A stretch of DNA of 64,000 bases from Adineta vaga (GCA_021613535.1 CP075494.1:2108001-2172000), one strand, 5' to 3'; shown: positions 27,255-33,342, numbered from the stretch's first letter. Numbers and translations are program-made. The notes: generated from the sequence alone by a model not told the origin.

Positions 27255-27323
27255 TGTGGGTGTGGGTGGACAAGGCTATGGTTGTGAGTATCTTGTATTC
27301 GCCGTCACTCACACCCACACTCT
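27255..27323. repeat. Telomere-like inverted-repeat element, left border of the expansin-GH5 cassette
   Basis: tgtgggtgtgggtgg...gtgagtatcttgtattc...cactcacacccacactct; an extra C-rich half lies at 27204-27238. Confidence 0.85.
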
Positions 27324-27596
27324 GCTTCTGTATCATCCATTTCAATCTCGTCGCCAATTATCACGTCTTAATTTCATGTTTAAGATATTTATTATGTAAA
27401 TAATAAATTGAAGGAAAAAATAACAACTACAATAGAAAAAGCATCTCTCTCTATATAGATATAGAAATATGAGAGGAGAATATCTTACGGATATTACGTA
27501 AGAAATTCAGAACCTACGTGAGATATTCCCTTGAACTATTCCTATGGTAGAAAGAAAAGAATGATATCTGTAGAATTGAAATAACAACTAATCTCG

Positions 27597-28700
27597 CTAT
27601 ATCACACCACGGTTGTCACGTTTACTACTGGATCTGCCACGGATGTTACGATTGCTACTGGATCTGCCACGGATGTTACGATTGCTACTGGATCTGCCAC
27701 GGATGTTACGATTGCTACTGGATCTGCCACGGATGTTACGATTGCTACTGGATCTGCCACGGATGTTACGATTGCTACTGGATCTGCCACGGATGTTACG
27801 ATTGCTACTGGATCTGCCACGGATGTTACGATTGCTACTGGATCTGCCACGGATGTTACGATTGCTACTGGATCTGCCACGGATGTTACGATTGCTACTG
27901 GATCTGCCACGGATGTTACGATTGCTACTGGATCTGCCACGGATGTTACGATTGCTACTGGATCTGCCACGGATGTTACGATTGCTACTGGATCTGCCAC
28001 GAACATTATGCTTACTAATGGATCTGCCACGGCTGTCACGATTGCTACTGGATCTGCCACGGACAGTACGGCTTCCACTAAATCGTACGTTCCCGGTTAT
28101 AATGCGAGCCTTTGTACTACCATGATCAGGCAGTGCAGAAATCGTATCAACCACTTGAACTCCACGAATATCAGTTATTCGTATGTGCAATGGTTGATTT
28201 CCAAAATCAGTGCCGACAAAGTGATTGTAGTTCATTTTTTCCAGGTTGATCCACTGACCACCTTTCGAATATTCCAGCTTCACTATCGGAAACTTGTGAT
28301 TGCGTATTTGAATTGCAGCCCAGCATTGACTGCTGCCCTCTTTAATGCGATACTTAAGATTTCTCGAGATTGGTGCTTCAATGACCTTCCATTGAATATC
28401 AATCTTACCATCTGCCATGTTGCCAATTTCACGAAAAGCATTCGGTGAAAGATCCAGTGCTCCACTGGCTCCCTCAGGATACAAATCTGTTACATAGACG
28501 ATTGTTTGTCCTTTTGGTCCTCTTACGCGTAGATAAGCACCAGCCATAGCTGCCTTGACACCCTTGAAATTATATTGAAAAGGATTCAATGCTGTAATTT
28601 TCATGTCAGCTGGGATTGGATCGAGTAAAGCTGCTCCACCAACATATCCAGAACCTGTATATGTTGCATATCCTTTAAATGTATCGTCCCAGTTACTCAT
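27597..28700 (-). CDS. Bacterial-type expansin (EXLX1/YoaJ-like) with C-terminal RGRSSS repeat tail; no signal peptide
   Basis: Colinear with Bacillus EXLX1 as I recall it: GYATYTGSGY.GGA.LLDPIP, VYVTDLYPEGA.GALDLSPNAF, YRIKEGSS..WAAIQ.RNHK, YNHFV. Possible 5'UTR intron 28725-28775. Confidence 0.93.
   Translation of the reverse strand: MSNWDDTFKGYATYTGSGYVGGAALLDPIPADMKITALNPFQYNFKGVKAAMAGAYLRVRGPKGQTIVYVTDLYPEGASGALDLSPNAFREIGNMADGKIDIQWKVIEAPISRNLKYRIKEGSSQCWAAIQIRNHKFPIVKLEYSKGGQWINLEKMNYNHFVGTDFGNQPLHIRITDIRGVQVVDTISALPDHGSTKARIITGNVRFSGSRTVRGRSSSNRDSRGRSISKHNVRGRSSSNRNIRGRSSSNRNIRGRSSSNRNIRGRSSSNRNIRGRSSSNRNIRGRSSSNRNIRGRSSSNRNIRGRSSSNRNIRGRSSSNRNIRGRSSSNRNIRGRSSSNRNIRGRSSSNRNIRGRSSSKRDNRGVI
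27605..28062 (-). repeat. Coding minisatellite, 30-bp unit encoding RGRSSSNRNI (~15 units, 12 identical at 27631-27990)
   Basis: gatctgccacggatgttacgattgctactg tandem array. Confidence 0.97.
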
Positions 28701-30677
28701 AAGACTGGCTCGTTCGAAGGACTTCTATTAAACAGTTGTGAAAAAAAAGAAAAAGATATAGTCGAATAATCATACATTGTCTGTTTTTTGTTTTTGTAGC
28801 TTAAAGTAATATTTCGTCGATCATGCATCCACATGCGTCAATGGGAAAAAAGAAGGGAGAAAAACATTCGCGCTGTTGTAATTTTGTAATATGAAATAAA
28901 ACGAATAAATATAGATGACGAAAGAAATTACTCATTGACGAGCAAGATCAATGACAGTATTCTTTTCCTATGTTTTACTTTTGTCAAAGAAACGTATAGC
29001 GAAGAAAAGTGAGCAATCTTGACTGAATGAAATACAGTGAATCATATCGCATCCATGATGTGCTTGTTAAGACCTCTCTCCTAAAAAAATGAATTTTCAT
29101 CAAAATTTTTGACATTGAGATAAACACACGAGGAGATAGCCCGTGTTTTTTTCAAAAATAGCTTTCTTATCTTATATTGGAAAGCATTTTAGAAATTTGA
29201 GCGTGAGTTTTCGAGAATTTCTTAATGAAGGAACTTGTTAACTTTTCTCTTTGCTTGTTAGATAAGAGGTTCAAAAGAGGAGCCTCATAGAACCTGCAGT
29301 TTTAGACGCTCTTTCGAACAAAAAGATATCTATATATTAGACAAAGACTCACAGAGCATTCTTGTCGACAAAATTATCAATTTTTGAACCCTTCTTTGAT
29401 ACATGTCTCCGTCAAACAACGTAGTATCGATCTAAAAATTTTACCACACTTCCCTCACTTCGGTCATTTTCTTGTGAGATGTTCGAATAATTCATCATTA
29501 TTTTCTTCGAAACTATTTGTAGTTCCAGCTGCAAAAATAGTATCAGAAAGTTGAAGCGATGGTTTTTAAATTTAACTTTGGAAACGTATCGTCTTTACGA
29601 AAAACATAAAACTTTCTTTTTACTTTTACTGCGCGAACATATCAATTTTTTATGCTAAATTATGACTGAAACTGAATCGAGCAGTGAGATTCTTTTAGTT
29701 CAGTTGTTTATATTGATTTTTGATAGATGATATTCACTTTGTTGTTCAAAAAACGAAAAACGATGAAAACTATTTGATAAACACGATCTTTTTTCGTAAT
29801 TCAGTGAGAGAAATCGTAAAAAAGCGTTTTTCTCAATAAATCATAAAAAATGAGAATAAATCAAACTTTTTTTTCTGATGAAGGTAATTTTCTGATTTAA
29901 AATCTTAAAATTTTTAAAATTTACATTTGTTATCTGTTCATCAAGGGCCATCTGACAATATATCAATAAAAATAATAAATCATTGGTTAAAACTCGAACT
30001 TTCCGTACATTAAAAGAAGAAATTCAAACATTCGTTGCAATCGTAAGAAAGATATGAGCAGGATAAAAAATCGTTAACTTCGTTATGAAGCGCTTTAAGA
30101 AAATATTGTCCATGAGAATGAGAAAACACTATTCATATGACTGAACTTGTGACAAGTAATAGGGAACTGCTGCGGACTTATGCAAGTGCTCTATACCATT
30201 TCAAAGTATATGATCTACAACGAAAAATTTATTCAAGAAAATACTTCTTTAGTTTTTAGTCAATAGATTGTATTTTGAATCAGCTATGAATATCCAATTG
30301 ATATATGTAGAAAGTGATAGAAAATAGTTCTCCTCGATTTTTATGGTACATTCATCATTGAAGTGTCTGACGGGAAAAAGTGAGAATATACTTTAAACAA
30401 AAATTGCATCCATTACTCATCAAGTCGTTGCACTAATACTATTTTTATGTCATGGAGCAACATTGAGTCATCAAACGGGAGAATAGAAAACGATTAAAAA
30501 AATACCCGTTCGTCACACAGAAAGTAATATAAATTATTATCACCGAATTACTGAAATGACGTTTTATAGGTATATAAATGTCAATGAAACGAAAATAGGA
30601 AAATCAAACATTTGTTATTTGAAAGAATCTTGCTAGTACGTTTTTTCATCTCAACTTAATACAACGACGATAAAATC

Positions 30678-31763
30678 ATGTTCGGTAGATTACGAGTGAA
30701 AGGCAATAAAATTGTTGGTGACAACAATCATCCTGTTCAACTGAAAGGAATGAGTCTTTTCTGGAGTCAATGGTCCACTCCTTTTTACAATAGAAAAACA
30801 ATATCGTATTTAGCATCGAAGGTCAAATGCACTATTATTCGTGCAGCAATGGGAGCTCAAAGTGGTCAGGATGGCTATCTAGATGGTAATTCGAATAGAG
30901 AGCAGGCCATCCATCAAGTTGTGACTGTTGTTGATGCTGCTATCCGCGAAGATATTTATGTTATTATTGATTGGCATGCACATGATGCCATTCACCATAG
31001 AAATCAAGCTCGACATTTTTTTGTATCGATGGCGAAGAAATATAAAAACACTCCAAATGTCATCTTCGAAATCTACAACGAACCTATCAATGAGCAATGG
31101 CATGAAGTGAAAACGTATGCTGAATCAGTGATTGGTGCCATTCGAGATACAGGAGCTAAGAACCTGATAGTGGTCGGAACACCTTTCTATTGTCAGCATG
31201 TTGATATTGCATCTGAAGATCCAATAATTGCTTTTCGTGATGTGGCTTATAGTTTACATTTCTATGCTGGAACACATCGTAAGAGTGAGCGTTCTAGAGC
31301 TCAAAAGGCTTTAGATAATGGTATTGCTCTGTTTGTAACTGAATGGGGTACGTGCCAGGCTGATGGAAATGGAAATCTTGACCTAAACGAAACTCAAAAA
31401 TGGTTCCGATTTATGGATGAGAACAAACTCAGTTGGTGTAATTGGTCATTGAATGATAAACCCGAAAGTGCTTCGGTACTGAAATCAGACATTAGTCACT
31501 CAAGACCTGCTGGTCCATGGGAACTAAACGAGTTAACTGAGTCGGGAAAATTTGTTTTCAATAAAATATCCAGTGGAAGTCGTAGCAGTCGTGGCAGATC
31601 CAGTAGCCAGCGTAAGAGCCGTGGCAGATCCAGCAGCAATCGTAAAAGTCGTGGCAGATCCAGTAGCAAGCATAAGAGCCGTGGTAGATCCAGTAGCAAG
31701 CATAAGAGCCGTGGTAGATCCAGTAGCAAGCATAAGAGCCGTGGCAGATCCAGTGGAATTTGA
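30678..31763 (+). CDS. GH5 (subfamily 2-like) endo-1,4-beta-glucanase with RGRSSS repeat tail; no signal peptide, intronless
   Basis: QLKGMSLFWS, YVIIDWH, acid/base FEIYNEP, YSLHFYA, nucleophile FVTEWG, SWCNWS. TATATAAA at 30571. Confidence 0.93.
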   Translation: MFGRLRVKGNKIVGDNNHPVQLKGMSLFWSQWSTPFYNRKTISYLASKVKCTIIRAAMGAQSGQDGYLDGNSNREQAIHQVVTVVDAAIREDIYVIIDWHAHDAIHHRNQARHFFVSMAKKYKNTPNVIFEIYNEPINEQWHEVKTYAESVIGAIRDTGAKNLIVVGTPFYCQHVDIASEDPIIAFRDVAYSLHFYAGTHRKSERSRAQKALDNGIALFVTEWGTCQADGNGNLDLNETQKWFRFMDENKLSWCNWSLNDKPESASVLKSDISHSRPAGPWELNELTESGKFVFNKISSGSRSSRGRSSSQRKSRGRSSSNRKSRGRSSSKHKSRGRSSSKHKSRGRSSSKHKSRGRSSGI

Positions 31764-31799
31764 AATAGCCGTGTTAAATCCAGCAGCAATCGCCAGAGC
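31590..31799 (+). repeat. Coding minisatellite, 30-bp unit encoding RGRSSSKHKS (6 units to the stop plus one decayed unit after it)
   Basis: cgtggcagatccagtagcaagcataagagc units; same core as the expansin array. Confidence 0.95.
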
Positions 31800-32233
31800 T
31801 AGGACAAATACAAGTATTGCAAGTAAAAATATTATACTTGTACTTATACTTCAGACAAATACTTTGGTATTACACTTACGTAAGAAAACGCGTTCGTTTG
31901 TTCATATAAGGTGCACCAAATTCAAAAGTCGAGCAAACCTTTTTTGCTGATATTTTTTAATATAGATGGGTATAGCTCGACGAGCTCTATAAAACTTTAT
32001 ATATGAAAAAAAAGACTGATTTTTGGGAGAAACTTTGCTGATTTTTAATTGTTTTGTTACGGAAATGATTTGGAAATAGACTCATTTGATCCATCGTGAT
32101 AAATTGTACCTACTGATACGAAATTTAACATGTTTCATGAAACACTTGTGAACAAACATTTCAATAATAGAAAACGATTCTAGTCAGAATCAACTGATGT
32201 AGACCAACACTCTATGTAGTCCAGTATGATACA

Positions 32234-32299
32234 TTAGAGTGTGAGTGTGGGTATCTTGTATTCACCCACACTCACACCCACACCCACACCCACACCCTA
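32234..32299. repeat. Telomere-like inverted-repeat element at the GH51 truncation point and right border of the expansin-GH5 cassette
   Basis: ttagagtgtgagtgtgggtatcttgtattcacccacactcacacccacacccacacccacacccta. Confidence 0.93.
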
Positions 32300-33342
32300 T
32301 CTTCGGCAAACGTCATTAATTCAATGATTCCAAAGCCTTCGGTGTTGTAGCCTATCCATGATCCTCTTCGACCGGGCCGCGATTGGAGTGGGCCAAGTGT
32401 TTCATTCCAGATGAAACGCTCTGGAATGGAAGGACCTTCGAGATCGTTACCGCCCGGAAGTCGAATAAAGCCAGGCTTGAGATCAGCAAACGCTTGTGCG
32501 ATATCCTTGCGAGCACCATTGATTCGACCGTTATACGTAGGAGGTAAGCATGAGATGAGATTGAACTCAAAATCACCTTTGGATCCTGCAGGAAACTCAA
32601 CAAAAAAGTAGTTTTTCGCAGATGGAGCAGCACTGGGAACAACGATGAGTGAAATGAAATTTACCCAGCTACCTGCGGCAACACTGGATACGTCAACAGT
32701 AGTCGAGCCGTAAGTGATTTGGCTATTTGAGTCTTTCAGTCCAATAGTTAATTTACCACCTGCTACAGAAGCCCCAGCTAATGGTTTGTAGAAGAAGCTC
32801 GAATTGTAAGTTTGAGCTTCGACCTTCATACCGTTGAAACCGAAGTTCATGAAACCTGCGACAGCAGTTGAAGTCGATGTCAGTGAGAATTTTAATTGAG
32901 CCGGTAAAGCGGTAGACAAAGGTTGATCGGTGACAAGGTTGATCGATCCCGATCCGTAGGAAGCCCATCCATCGAGCGATCGGCTTCTCTCTAGAAATCA
33001 CATTTAGGTTAAATATATATTCTGGTAGGAAGGAGGGACAGACTTACCTTGAAAAGCACGATTATAGATGAGCTCAGCATATAAACCGCCATCGTCACCC
33101 CTATTGATGTTGGTCTCGAGAATGACACCATGCATTGTAGATGGAATACTCTGACCAGTGGTAGCATCCTGGATATTGAGTGAAACAGTGTTGGCACGTA
33201 TGCTATTCGAAGATGGCCAGGCGACTGACACTGTCGCTAAAAGTACAGTAATAAAGCCGAATATCGACAGTGAATTCTAAATAAAATCCAATTTAGTTAG
33301 GTGGTTTTCGATACCAAAAACAGAAGATGTACTTGCCTTCAT
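32299..33342 (-). pseudogene. 3'-truncated secreted GH51 alpha-L-arabinofuranosidase; introns 33277-33336 (GC-AG) and 32991-33047
   Basis: Spliced product MKNSLSIFGFITVLLATVSVAWP...ETNINRGDDGGLYAELIYNRAFQ...PGFIRLPGGNDLEG...RPGRRGSW.GYNTEGFG. The frame runs straight into (GGGTGT)n and no downstream exons are visible. Confidence 0.85.

Follow-up and report, generated by a model that had tools for sequence, protein, structure and literature searches.

Homologous RGRSSS repeat tails on a neighbouring expansin and GH5 endoglucanase of bacterial type in Adineta vaga

We analysed a window of 64,000 nucleotides (nt) of Adineta vaga DNA (CP075494.1:2108001-2172000), which holds two intron-less open reading frames (ORFs) of bacterial type, an expansin on the minus strand and a GH5 endoglucanase on the plus strand, arranged head to head and divergently, with 1977 bp between them. 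Each ends in a tail built from the same 30-bp unit, whose translation is RGRSSS followed by four variable residues, and it is the origin, structure, expression and possible function of these two tails that are discussed here. Positions are those of the window, and genome searches cover the six-contig assembly of 100.8 Mb (~31% G+C). The features of the locus are the following:

27597..28700, minus strand: expansin gene, a single ORF of 367 aa, with a two-domain EXLX1 body and the repeat tail
28080..28700, minus strand: expansin body (D1, a double-psi beta-barrel or DPBB, and D2, CBM63), residues 1-207, with the ATG at the mature N-terminus
27597..28079, minus strand: expansin tail, i.e., half-unit SGSRTV, 15 units of 30 bp, RGVI and the stop
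28078..28120, minus strand: GT-AG intron of 43 nt in the public model (P0001), unsupported by the contigs used here
28725..28755, minus strand: polypyrimidine tract and AG, 24 nt upstream of the expansin ATG, a probable splice acceptor
28701..30677, no strand: divergent intergenic region of 1977 bp, where coverage by runs guessed to be RNA is limited to the expansin 5' leader
30678..31763, plus strand: GH5 endoglucanase gene, a single ORF of 361 aa, with the catalytic domain and the repeat tail
31572..31763, plus strand: GH5 tail, i.e., half-unit SGSRSS, units G1-G5, and G6 with an internal TGA stop
31764..31802, plus strand: rest of G6, decayed unit G7 (RVKSSSNRQS) and TAG, untranslated, behind the stop

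Tandem Repeats Finder places the expansin array at 27607-28063 (30-bp period, 15.2 copies, 95% matches) and the GH5 array at 31568-31789 (same period, about 6 copies, 91% matches). In translation, the expansin array consists of units E1-E15, followed by RGVI and the stop, and its units E3-E14 are 12 identical copies of RGRSSSNRNI. The GH5 array has 5.5 translated units: G1-G5 are RGRSSS followed by QRKS, NRKS or KHKS; G6 holds the TGA stop; and G7 is decayed, 6 of its 30 bases differing from the unit consensus and three of them, in two codons, changing the RGRSSS core. An initial annotation of this DNA had counted some 15 units on the expansin and 6 on the GH5 protein, and arrays of 15 and 5.5 units are indeed present on the two bacterial-type proteins. 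Like a coding minisatellite, both have head-to-tail units and a period of 30, divisible by three, in continuity with both ORFs. Two of the three forward frames of the unit are open.

The comparison of the two arrays supports that the tails are homologous DNA and did not arise by convergence, through their identical core, the common half-unit AGTGGAAG and the presence of a KH variant in both. The arrays are mutually inverted, 3.5 kb apart and 81-83% complementary. The common block opens at the same base in both genes, with the variant half-unit (AGTGGAAG..., encoding SGSR), and over the first 30 nt in unit phase (G0 versus E0) 22 of the 30 positions are identical between the genes. Moreover, the KH variant, typical of the GH5 units, is also found in expansin unit E2. 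The earlier proposal that a single 30-bp unit was either copied from one gene to the other or added to both is therefore well founded. At the junctions, the expansin reads ...VRF/SGSR where bacterial EXLX1 proteins stop at ...VQFPD, and the GH5 protein reads ...KIS/SGSR, its closest relative ending in ...KISDEN and the Cystobacter enzyme in ...KLSQ: in each gene, the repeat block takes over, in frame, precisely where the bacterial domain naturally ends. The native bases ahead of the two junctions (cGATtt and AtATCC) are similar to the unit in the same phase (AGATCC), which fits a microhomology-assisted joining. In GH5, the first unit is made whole by the native Ser codon, and the array is the more degenerate of the two, so that GH5 is slightly favoured as the source of the array and the copy would have run from GH5 to the expansin.

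The unit is confined to these two genes. Its 18-nt core, CGTGGCAGATCCAGTAGC, has 21 matches with up to 3 mismatches in the window, versus 0.01 expected, and exact and 2-mismatch searches of the whole genome return only the two genes and one 2-mismatch chance match. A degenerate codon pattern (RGRSSS-N12-RG) gives 10 genomic matches outside the arrays versus 22 for its reversed control, i.e., the level of chance. Used as a protein query against the genome, the tail retrieves only the GH5 tail (the match crosses one TGA) and unrelated low complexity; the weak matches on contig 1 belong to an unrelated 15-bp array of the TQPTG type and those on contig 3 to unrelated low-complexity ORFs. From these core, codon-pattern and protein searches, the unit represents no dispersed minisatellite and no wider family of RGRSSS-tailed proteins in this genome. 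This answers the concern that a common non-coding minisatellite had landed in both genes, and it also removes the idea of a general tag on other enzymes, as no other gene of the 100.8-Mb genome carries the tail. Elsewhere, a word search with the tail in 5.8 billion proteins yields none among 8000 candidates at an E-value of 0.001 or better, the ESM Atlas gives no usable match, and Pfam has no match in either tail. The 18-mer scans of metagenome and bacterial genome contigs give chance matches only, among the matches listed, with one match per contig except for one contig with two that are 263 nt apart; the pattern is too short to be informative either way. No paper that we found describes the tail, the string RGRSSS appearing in the literature as optical-character noise and in one unrelated paper.

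Are the arrays transcribed, and in which frame are they read? Three sequencing runs, which are only guessed to be RNA and were seen as assembled contigs, unable to show RNA ends or rare isoforms, cover both genes and leave the 2-kb spacer bare, while a DNA run, X5, covers everything. On the expansin, contigs 27972/27989-28724 start in the 5' leader, span the whole body and reach the first repeat units; they show 0 gaps and no difference. Contigs of the 60-nt repeat cycle are 12-18x deeper than the expansin body (225/175/80 versus 15/10/7 in the three runs), as expected if the whole array is transcribed. On GH5, the contigs occupy 30761-30958, 31137-31685 and 31715-31862; a contig at 31345-31685 leads from the domain into the repeats with 0 gaps, and that at 31715-31862 covers the last GH5 units, the TGA and ~100 nt of 3' untranslated region (UTR). 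Splicing out of the repeats, or transcripts stopping before them, had been named as what would overturn the initial annotation; the contigs instead run colinearly from the domains into the repeats. The public model of the expansin (P0001, I4U23_022448, 351 aa), identical to most of the ORF, removes a 43-nt GT-AG intron and reads the array as VADPVAIVTS. The contigs of the three runs are colinear through 28078-28120, with 0 gaps, and the splice would delete the last conserved D2 strand (A-Y-I-V-P-G-N-V-Q-F in homologues), so that this model is probably in the wrong frame. We consider it very likely that the unspliced RGRSSS frame is the real one.

The expansin aligns with the solved Bacillus subtilis YoaJ/EXLX1 chains 2bh0, 3d30 and 4fer at 1.3e-93 (phmmer, residues 4-207 on 3-206) and is 70% identical to Paenibacillus EXLX1 proteins, the Pfam DPBB_1 match being just at the cut-off. 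T12, T14, S16, D71, Y73, E75, D82, K119, W126 and Y157 are kept; the roles of Asp82 and of the polar D1 face residues in EXLX1 are described in PMC5072189. The position of EXLX1 W125 (expansin codon 126, 28323-28325) is a Cys, where 18 of 19 aligned homologues have W or Y and the orthologue of Rotaria keeps Trp. In the AlphaFold model, the block means of the predicted local distance difference test are mostly 72-96 in the body (63 in one block) and 28-53 in the tail. The ratio of non-synonymous to synonymous substitution rates (dN/dS) of the body versus Rotaria is 0.15. The GH5 protein has the (beta/alpha)8 catalytic domain of its family, matches PF00150 at 2.7e-58 and the solved chain 5ihs at 7.2e-87, also 1egz and 1a3h, and keeps the NEP (acid/base Glu) and TEW (nucleophile Glu) motifs; among bacteria, its best relatives are found in myxobacteria and Mahella (52-57% identity), and its dN/dS is 0.26. 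The nearest solved chains include 1egz, 1a3h and 1tvn, presumably GH5_2 enzymes, which makes GH5_2 a candidate subfamily. At the sequence level, the expansin and the GH5 thus behave as working genes under purifying selection and not as decaying insertions. A TATA-like motif lies ~100 nt upstream of the GH5 ATG. A word search of the protein database found no protein identical to the GH5 ORF within 0.55-1.75x its length, and the gene may be absent from, or very differently modelled in, the public annotation. A decayed GH5 copy lies on contig 3 (L025:1050-1603; G000:C3 ~1259275-1259830), with in-frame TAG stops and internal deletions, and it includes ~370 bp of the GH5 upstream region (window 30303-30677) at 74-87% identity. 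The homology of this copy ends at 31482, before the tail, and thus gives no date for the latter.

Neither protein has a signal peptide. The expansin ORF begins one residue ahead of the mature N-terminus of the Paenibacillus proteins, and the GH5 protein starts M-F-G, two residues ahead of the conserved G-x-L-x-V-x-GN, where bacterial homologues carry leaders of 30-60 residues. No hydrophobic N-terminal stretch is found in either ORF, unlike in all bacterial homologues compared: the maximal Kyte-Doolittle value over 11 residues is 1.15 (expansin) and 0.97 (GH5) versus 2.2-3.4. Upstream, 8 open codons and then two stops precede the expansin ATG, and 6 codons and then a stop precede that of GH5. 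The three runs have no contig in 28797-30760 and hence show no upstream exon from which a signal peptide could come. Hence, the absence of signal peptides announced by the initial annotation holds, on the low hydrophobicity, the ATG at the mature end and the bare 2-kb intergenic stretch, where a coding exon upstream would have contradicted it.

The 5' end of the expansin mRNA may itself be processed. A long pyrimidine tract ends in an AG 24 nt upstream of the ATG, and the contigs of two runs stop right behind it, at 28724, and that of the third continues to 28796; such a branch is expected in a de Bruijn assembly from unspliced RNA versus RNA joined to a shared leader. A motif (aatag/AAGyCCTT) is conserved upstream of the Rotaria expansin orthologue. 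In bdelloids, over half of the mRNAs receive a leader of 23 nt by trans-splicing, as stated in a passage of PMC1925144 that cites Pouchkina-Stantcheva and Tunnacliffe 2005. The AG is probably a trans-splice acceptor; contigs cannot prove RNA ends, so this assignment stays inferential. The unspliced leader (28725-28796, minus strand) contains a hydrophobic, out-of-frame upstream ORF of 26 codons, whose end overlaps the main ATG and whose own ATG is the sole upstream one there. The AG acceptor at 28725-28726, if used, would remove it.

Orthologues place the tail in time. That of the expansin in Rotaria sp. Silwood1 (L073:1413-2462) starts with MSNW, has no signal peptide and shares 78% identity in the body; its extension, which follows ...VQFPD at the same junction, is a DUF7910/FRG1-like beta-trefoil repeat and not RGRSSS. 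The deposited Rotaria model (P0037) starts 32 codons too late. The same kind of DUF7910/FRG1-like module is also found behind some myxobacterial GH5 enzymes. The GH5 orthologue, at 61% identity, lies on a rotifer-like metagenome contig (L072:3001-3873), starts M-Y-G at the same position and has neither signal peptide nor tail; its neighbours are EH- and SH3-domain genes, which points to a eukaryote as its source. On the two orthologous contigs, the expansin and the GH5 gene are not adjacent. As both orthologues lack signal peptide and tail, both transfers and both signal-peptide losses predate the split of the lineages, and the tail is younger and specific to the Adineta side. It is thus supported, from these comparisons, that the tail is an addition of the host lineage in Adineta, made long after gene transfer and copied locally between the genes. 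This agrees with the host-added tail proposed earlier, as bacterial homologues end at the domain, the rotifer orthologues have no tail and the nearest bacterial relatives differ. Since the tail is much younger than the state without a signal peptide, it cannot have been the original substitute for one. Two candidate sources of the unit were discarded as too weak, namely the Rotaria linker (DRSNSD, 9/18 identity to the unit core) and the 3' end of the GH5 orthologue (9/17 identity to the first half-unit).

A second haplotype, ~7% divergent, is present in the DNA run X5, with 30 differences in 420 nt (28542-28961, the upstream region and the 5' end of the expansin). Within expansin codons 5-43, 7 of the 9 differences between the haplotypes are synonymous. 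The contigs of the RNA-guess runs show the reference allele only. Loose ends of the X5 contigs (27519-27641, contigs partly read) join the distal unit to an E2-type unit, in an E2-type tandem that is absent from the reference, and the structure of the array seems to differ between the haplotypes.

The expansin-GH5 cassette measures 4.9 kb and is bracketed by two telomere-repeat-armed hairpins:

27256..27325, no strand: left border hairpin, telomere-repeat-armed, with spacer ATCTTGTATTC
32238..32297, no strand: right border hairpin, with spacer ATCTTGTATTC in the same orientation, running into a (CACCCA)n telomere repeat

The hairpin spacer, GTATCTTGTATTC and two flanking bases (motif GTATCTTGTATTC plus RCC), occurs genome-wide at these two sites only, in both cases on the plus strand, which looks like the duplication of a single element around the cassette. 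The hairpins fit a region shaped by break repair, and it is from such repair that the inverted copy of the array most plausibly comes. At 32272-33231 on the minus strand, pieces of a gene for a GH51-type arabinofuranosidase (ASD1 domain) end at the (CACCCA)n repeat.

Taken together, these data lead to the following scenario. Two genes of bacterial origin, one for an EXLX1 closest to Paenibacillus and one for a GH5 closest to myxobacterial and other bacterial enzymes, were acquired long ago by bdelloids and have been kept under purifying selection without signal peptide. In the Adineta lineage only, each ORF has been extended at the C-terminus of its domain by a 30-bp minisatellite, (RGRSSS + 4 variable residues)n. 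One array would have been copied to the 3' end of the other gene, by a local microhomology-assisted template switch or by conversion during break repair. The array would then have grown and shrunk as minisatellites do, leaving the 12 identical expansin units, the stop within a GH5 unit and the haplotype difference. With transcription running on from the domains into the arrays, and RGRSSS as the reading frame, the proteins would carry disordered, charged tails with RxRxxS motifs. We hold this account of the origin, structure and expression of the tails with fair confidence, function being left out of that judgement. Several points weigh against it. The runs taken as RNA are guesses, whose contigs cannot reveal RNA ends or rare isoforms; 27400-27641, i.e., the distal expansin unit, the stop and the 3' UTR, has no contig of these runs, a coverage hole that proves nothing by itself; the public gene model splices the expansin differently; and the two tails are known at the level of DNA and of contigs. 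That the RGRSSS frame is open is by itself no evidence, since the unit can be read without a stop in two of three forward frames. For the age of the tail, the Adineta-Rotaria split is the sole bound, and the route and direction given for the copying are proposals. Finally, a GH5 tail cut by a stop and the apparent length variation between haplotypes fit a weak or absent constraint on length, and the signal of selection on the core, given below, comes from four variant sites.

The explanation that competes most directly is that the tail is a neutral passenger, i.e., an unstable minisatellite whose period happens to be divisible by three, read after the original stops were lost or bypassed, and tolerated, as a disordered stretch, without being of use. 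We regard this as a real possibility, somewhat short of an even chance. The 12 identical units speak of a very recent expansion, the GH5 stop falls inside G6 with a decayed unit behind it, the other haplotype shows signs of a different array, and the orthologues function without a tail; two of three frames are open, the tail is found on only two genes of the genome, and the change of W125 to Cys in the binding platform of the expansin may signal relaxed constraint. On the other hand, both junctions are precise, keep the frame and coincide with the natural C-terminus, one and the same block has been fixed on two functionally related genes, and variation in the core is biased towards synonymous changes, whereas the untranslated G7 has lost the core. 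The domains themselves are clearly under purifying selection. That the tail is not translated as RGRSSS, because the 43-nt intron is used (giving VADPVAIVTS) or because the mRNAs end within or before the array, appears quite improbable to us. The NCBI model I4U23_022448 has that structure, the intron resembles short bdelloid introns in its GT-AG borders and its length, and the distal expansin array and its 3' UTR have no RNA-guess contig; but three runs pass colinearly through 28078-28120, the last D2 beta-strand would be deleted, and the repeat-cycle contigs are 12-18x deeper than the body; GH5, for its part, is without an intron of this kind, and contigs cover its tail, stop and 3' UTR.

The remaining explanations concern where the arrays come from. 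Arrival with foreign DNA, as one donor fragment whose two genes were already tailed, could be suggested by the adjacency of the genes, by the discrete borders of the cassette with its paired hairpins and their unique common spacer, and by the existence of bacterial GH5-expansin fusions, e.g., in Xanthomonas and Xylella. We judge it highly improbable: the closest bacterial relatives differ between the genes and there is no adjacency on the orthologous contigs, which argues against a single tailed fragment; none of the bacterial homologues listed continues past the domain, except into other modules; the start codons specific to rotifers are also found in the Rotaria and metagenome orthologues, which have no tail; and the word search with the tail is empty among its 8000 candidates. 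The symmetric layout (hairpin-array-gene / gene-array-hairpin), with inverted arrays that are 81-83% complementary and flanking elements sharing a spacer unique to two sites, also evokes a Foldback-like transposon with the two genes as cargo and the arrays as its tandem-repeat terminal inverted repeats. This is very improbable in our view, since such an element should be multi-copy and the 100.8-Mb genome has the unit at no other site; moreover, the arrays lie 280 and 445 bp inside the hairpins, the flanks are otherwise without inverted repeats, no transposase is found, and the phase of the array is tied to the frame in which each domain ends. An assembly artefact, in which the repeat would be collapsed or chimeric, might be suspected because perfect arrays of 30 bp are difficult to assemble and the short-read contigs of X5 break in the array, but both junctions and the repeat cycle recur in independent data (a 2013 DNA study and a 2024 study) and the public protein model is built on the same structure, which makes the chance of an artefact nearly negligible. 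An origin of the arrays in the Adineta lineage, added to two old acquisitions and copied locally from one to the other, is well supported.

What such tails could do is a separate and more tentative question. The net charge is ~+45 over 160 residues in the expansin tail and ~+23 over 63 residues in that of GH5, with a calculated isoelectric point of ~12, and the tails contain 15 and 5 RxRxxS motifs, respectively. Among distinct translated units, the RGRSSS core shows 3 synonymous variants and 1 non-synonymous variant (P=0.046 under neutrality), versus 2 synonymous and 10 non-synonymous ones in the four variable residues (0.063 for this contrast, one-sided hypergeometric), a hint of constraint on the core at the protein level. 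The basic expansin of B. subtilis binds whole cell walls electrostatically, W125, W126 and Y157 binding glucan (review PMC5072189). This electrostatic binding, the loss of W125 in Adineta and the presence of a folded lectin-like module at the same junction in Rotaria are the grounds for proposing that the tail might serve as a non-specific electrostatic anchor to anionic polymers, a cheap stand-in for a carbohydrate-binding module, which we see as a possibility leaning towards doubtful. A C-terminal binding add-on would thus be a recurrent solution at this site of the expansin. A more specific form of this idea, that the RGRSSS array is a transferable, phosphorylatable module evolved by the host, which would first ensure an export of the Tat/FGF2 type and then anchor the two enzymes side by side on anionic food polymers, is unlikely; if it were true, the array would have been recruited twice because selection favoured the same address for an expansin and a cellulase. 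The weight not given to the anchor or to the nearly neutral extension goes to other roles, e.g., an unconventional export or a phospho-switch.

The locus is a clean example, resolved to the base pair, of bacterial genes acquired horizontally that are still being remodelled in an animal long after their transfer. It also sharpens the question of how a cellulase and an expansin, conserved for so long without signal peptide, reach their substrates in bdelloids. Moreover, it offers a natural comparison of proteins with and without the tail, either between Adineta and Rotaria or between the long and the short haplotype.

Several known systems resemble this one in part. The EXLX1 proteins of B. subtilis (YoaJ) and Paenibacillus have the same two-domain body, with the polar D1 face, D82, W126 and Y157; in contrast, the rotifer protein has no signal peptide, has a Cys for W125 and carries a polycationic repeat of 160 residues where the bacterial ones stop. 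The Rotaria orthologue shares the MSNW start, the upstream motif and the junction, and differs by its folded DUF7910/FRG1-like extension and by keeping W125. The GH5-expansin fusions of Xanthomonas and Xylella and the GH5-DUF7910 proteins of myxobacteria likewise combine GH5, expansin and C-terminal binding module; however, the bacterial fusions make one secreted polypeptide with a folded module, whereas Adineta has two divergent genes and a low-complexity tail.

Arginine- and serine-rich regions of other proteins come closer to the composition of the tail. The domains of SR proteins (RS domains) and protamine-like tails are, likewise, Arg/Ser-rich and predicted to be disordered, with motifs of the type used by basophilic kinases, and this part of the likeness drawn by the initial annotation stands, RxRxxS sites included. 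The rest of it does not: the Adineta tail has ~30% Arg and not >50%, about one RS per 10 residues where an RS domain is dominated by RS/SR dipeptides, and no RRM; it sits on enzymes of extracellular type and has no sequence relationship to these proteins. Coding minisatellites are in-frame variable number tandem repeats, as in mucins or yeast adhesins. The arrays described here are alike in their period, a multiple of three, in their near-identical units and in a copy number that differs between genes and apparently between haplotypes, and they are unlike them in being carried by two unrelated neighbouring genes, in inverted orientation, with no other copy in the genome.

The nearest parallel may be found in plant-parasitic (cyst) nematodes, whose GH5 cellulases and expansin-like proteins reportedly share a CBM2 module (Qin et al. 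2004, Danchin et al. 2010). There too, a horizontally acquired cellulase and expansin came to share a C-terminal module after their transfer, as in Adineta. In the nematodes, however, the proteins possess a signal peptide, their genes contain introns and the module is a genuine carbohydrate-binding domain with its linker, whereas those of Adineta lack a signal peptide and share a charged repeat. What would be new in the rotifer is that the shared module is a polycationic repeat born in the host and carried by two proteins without signal peptide, and that its spread from one gene to the other can be read base by base.

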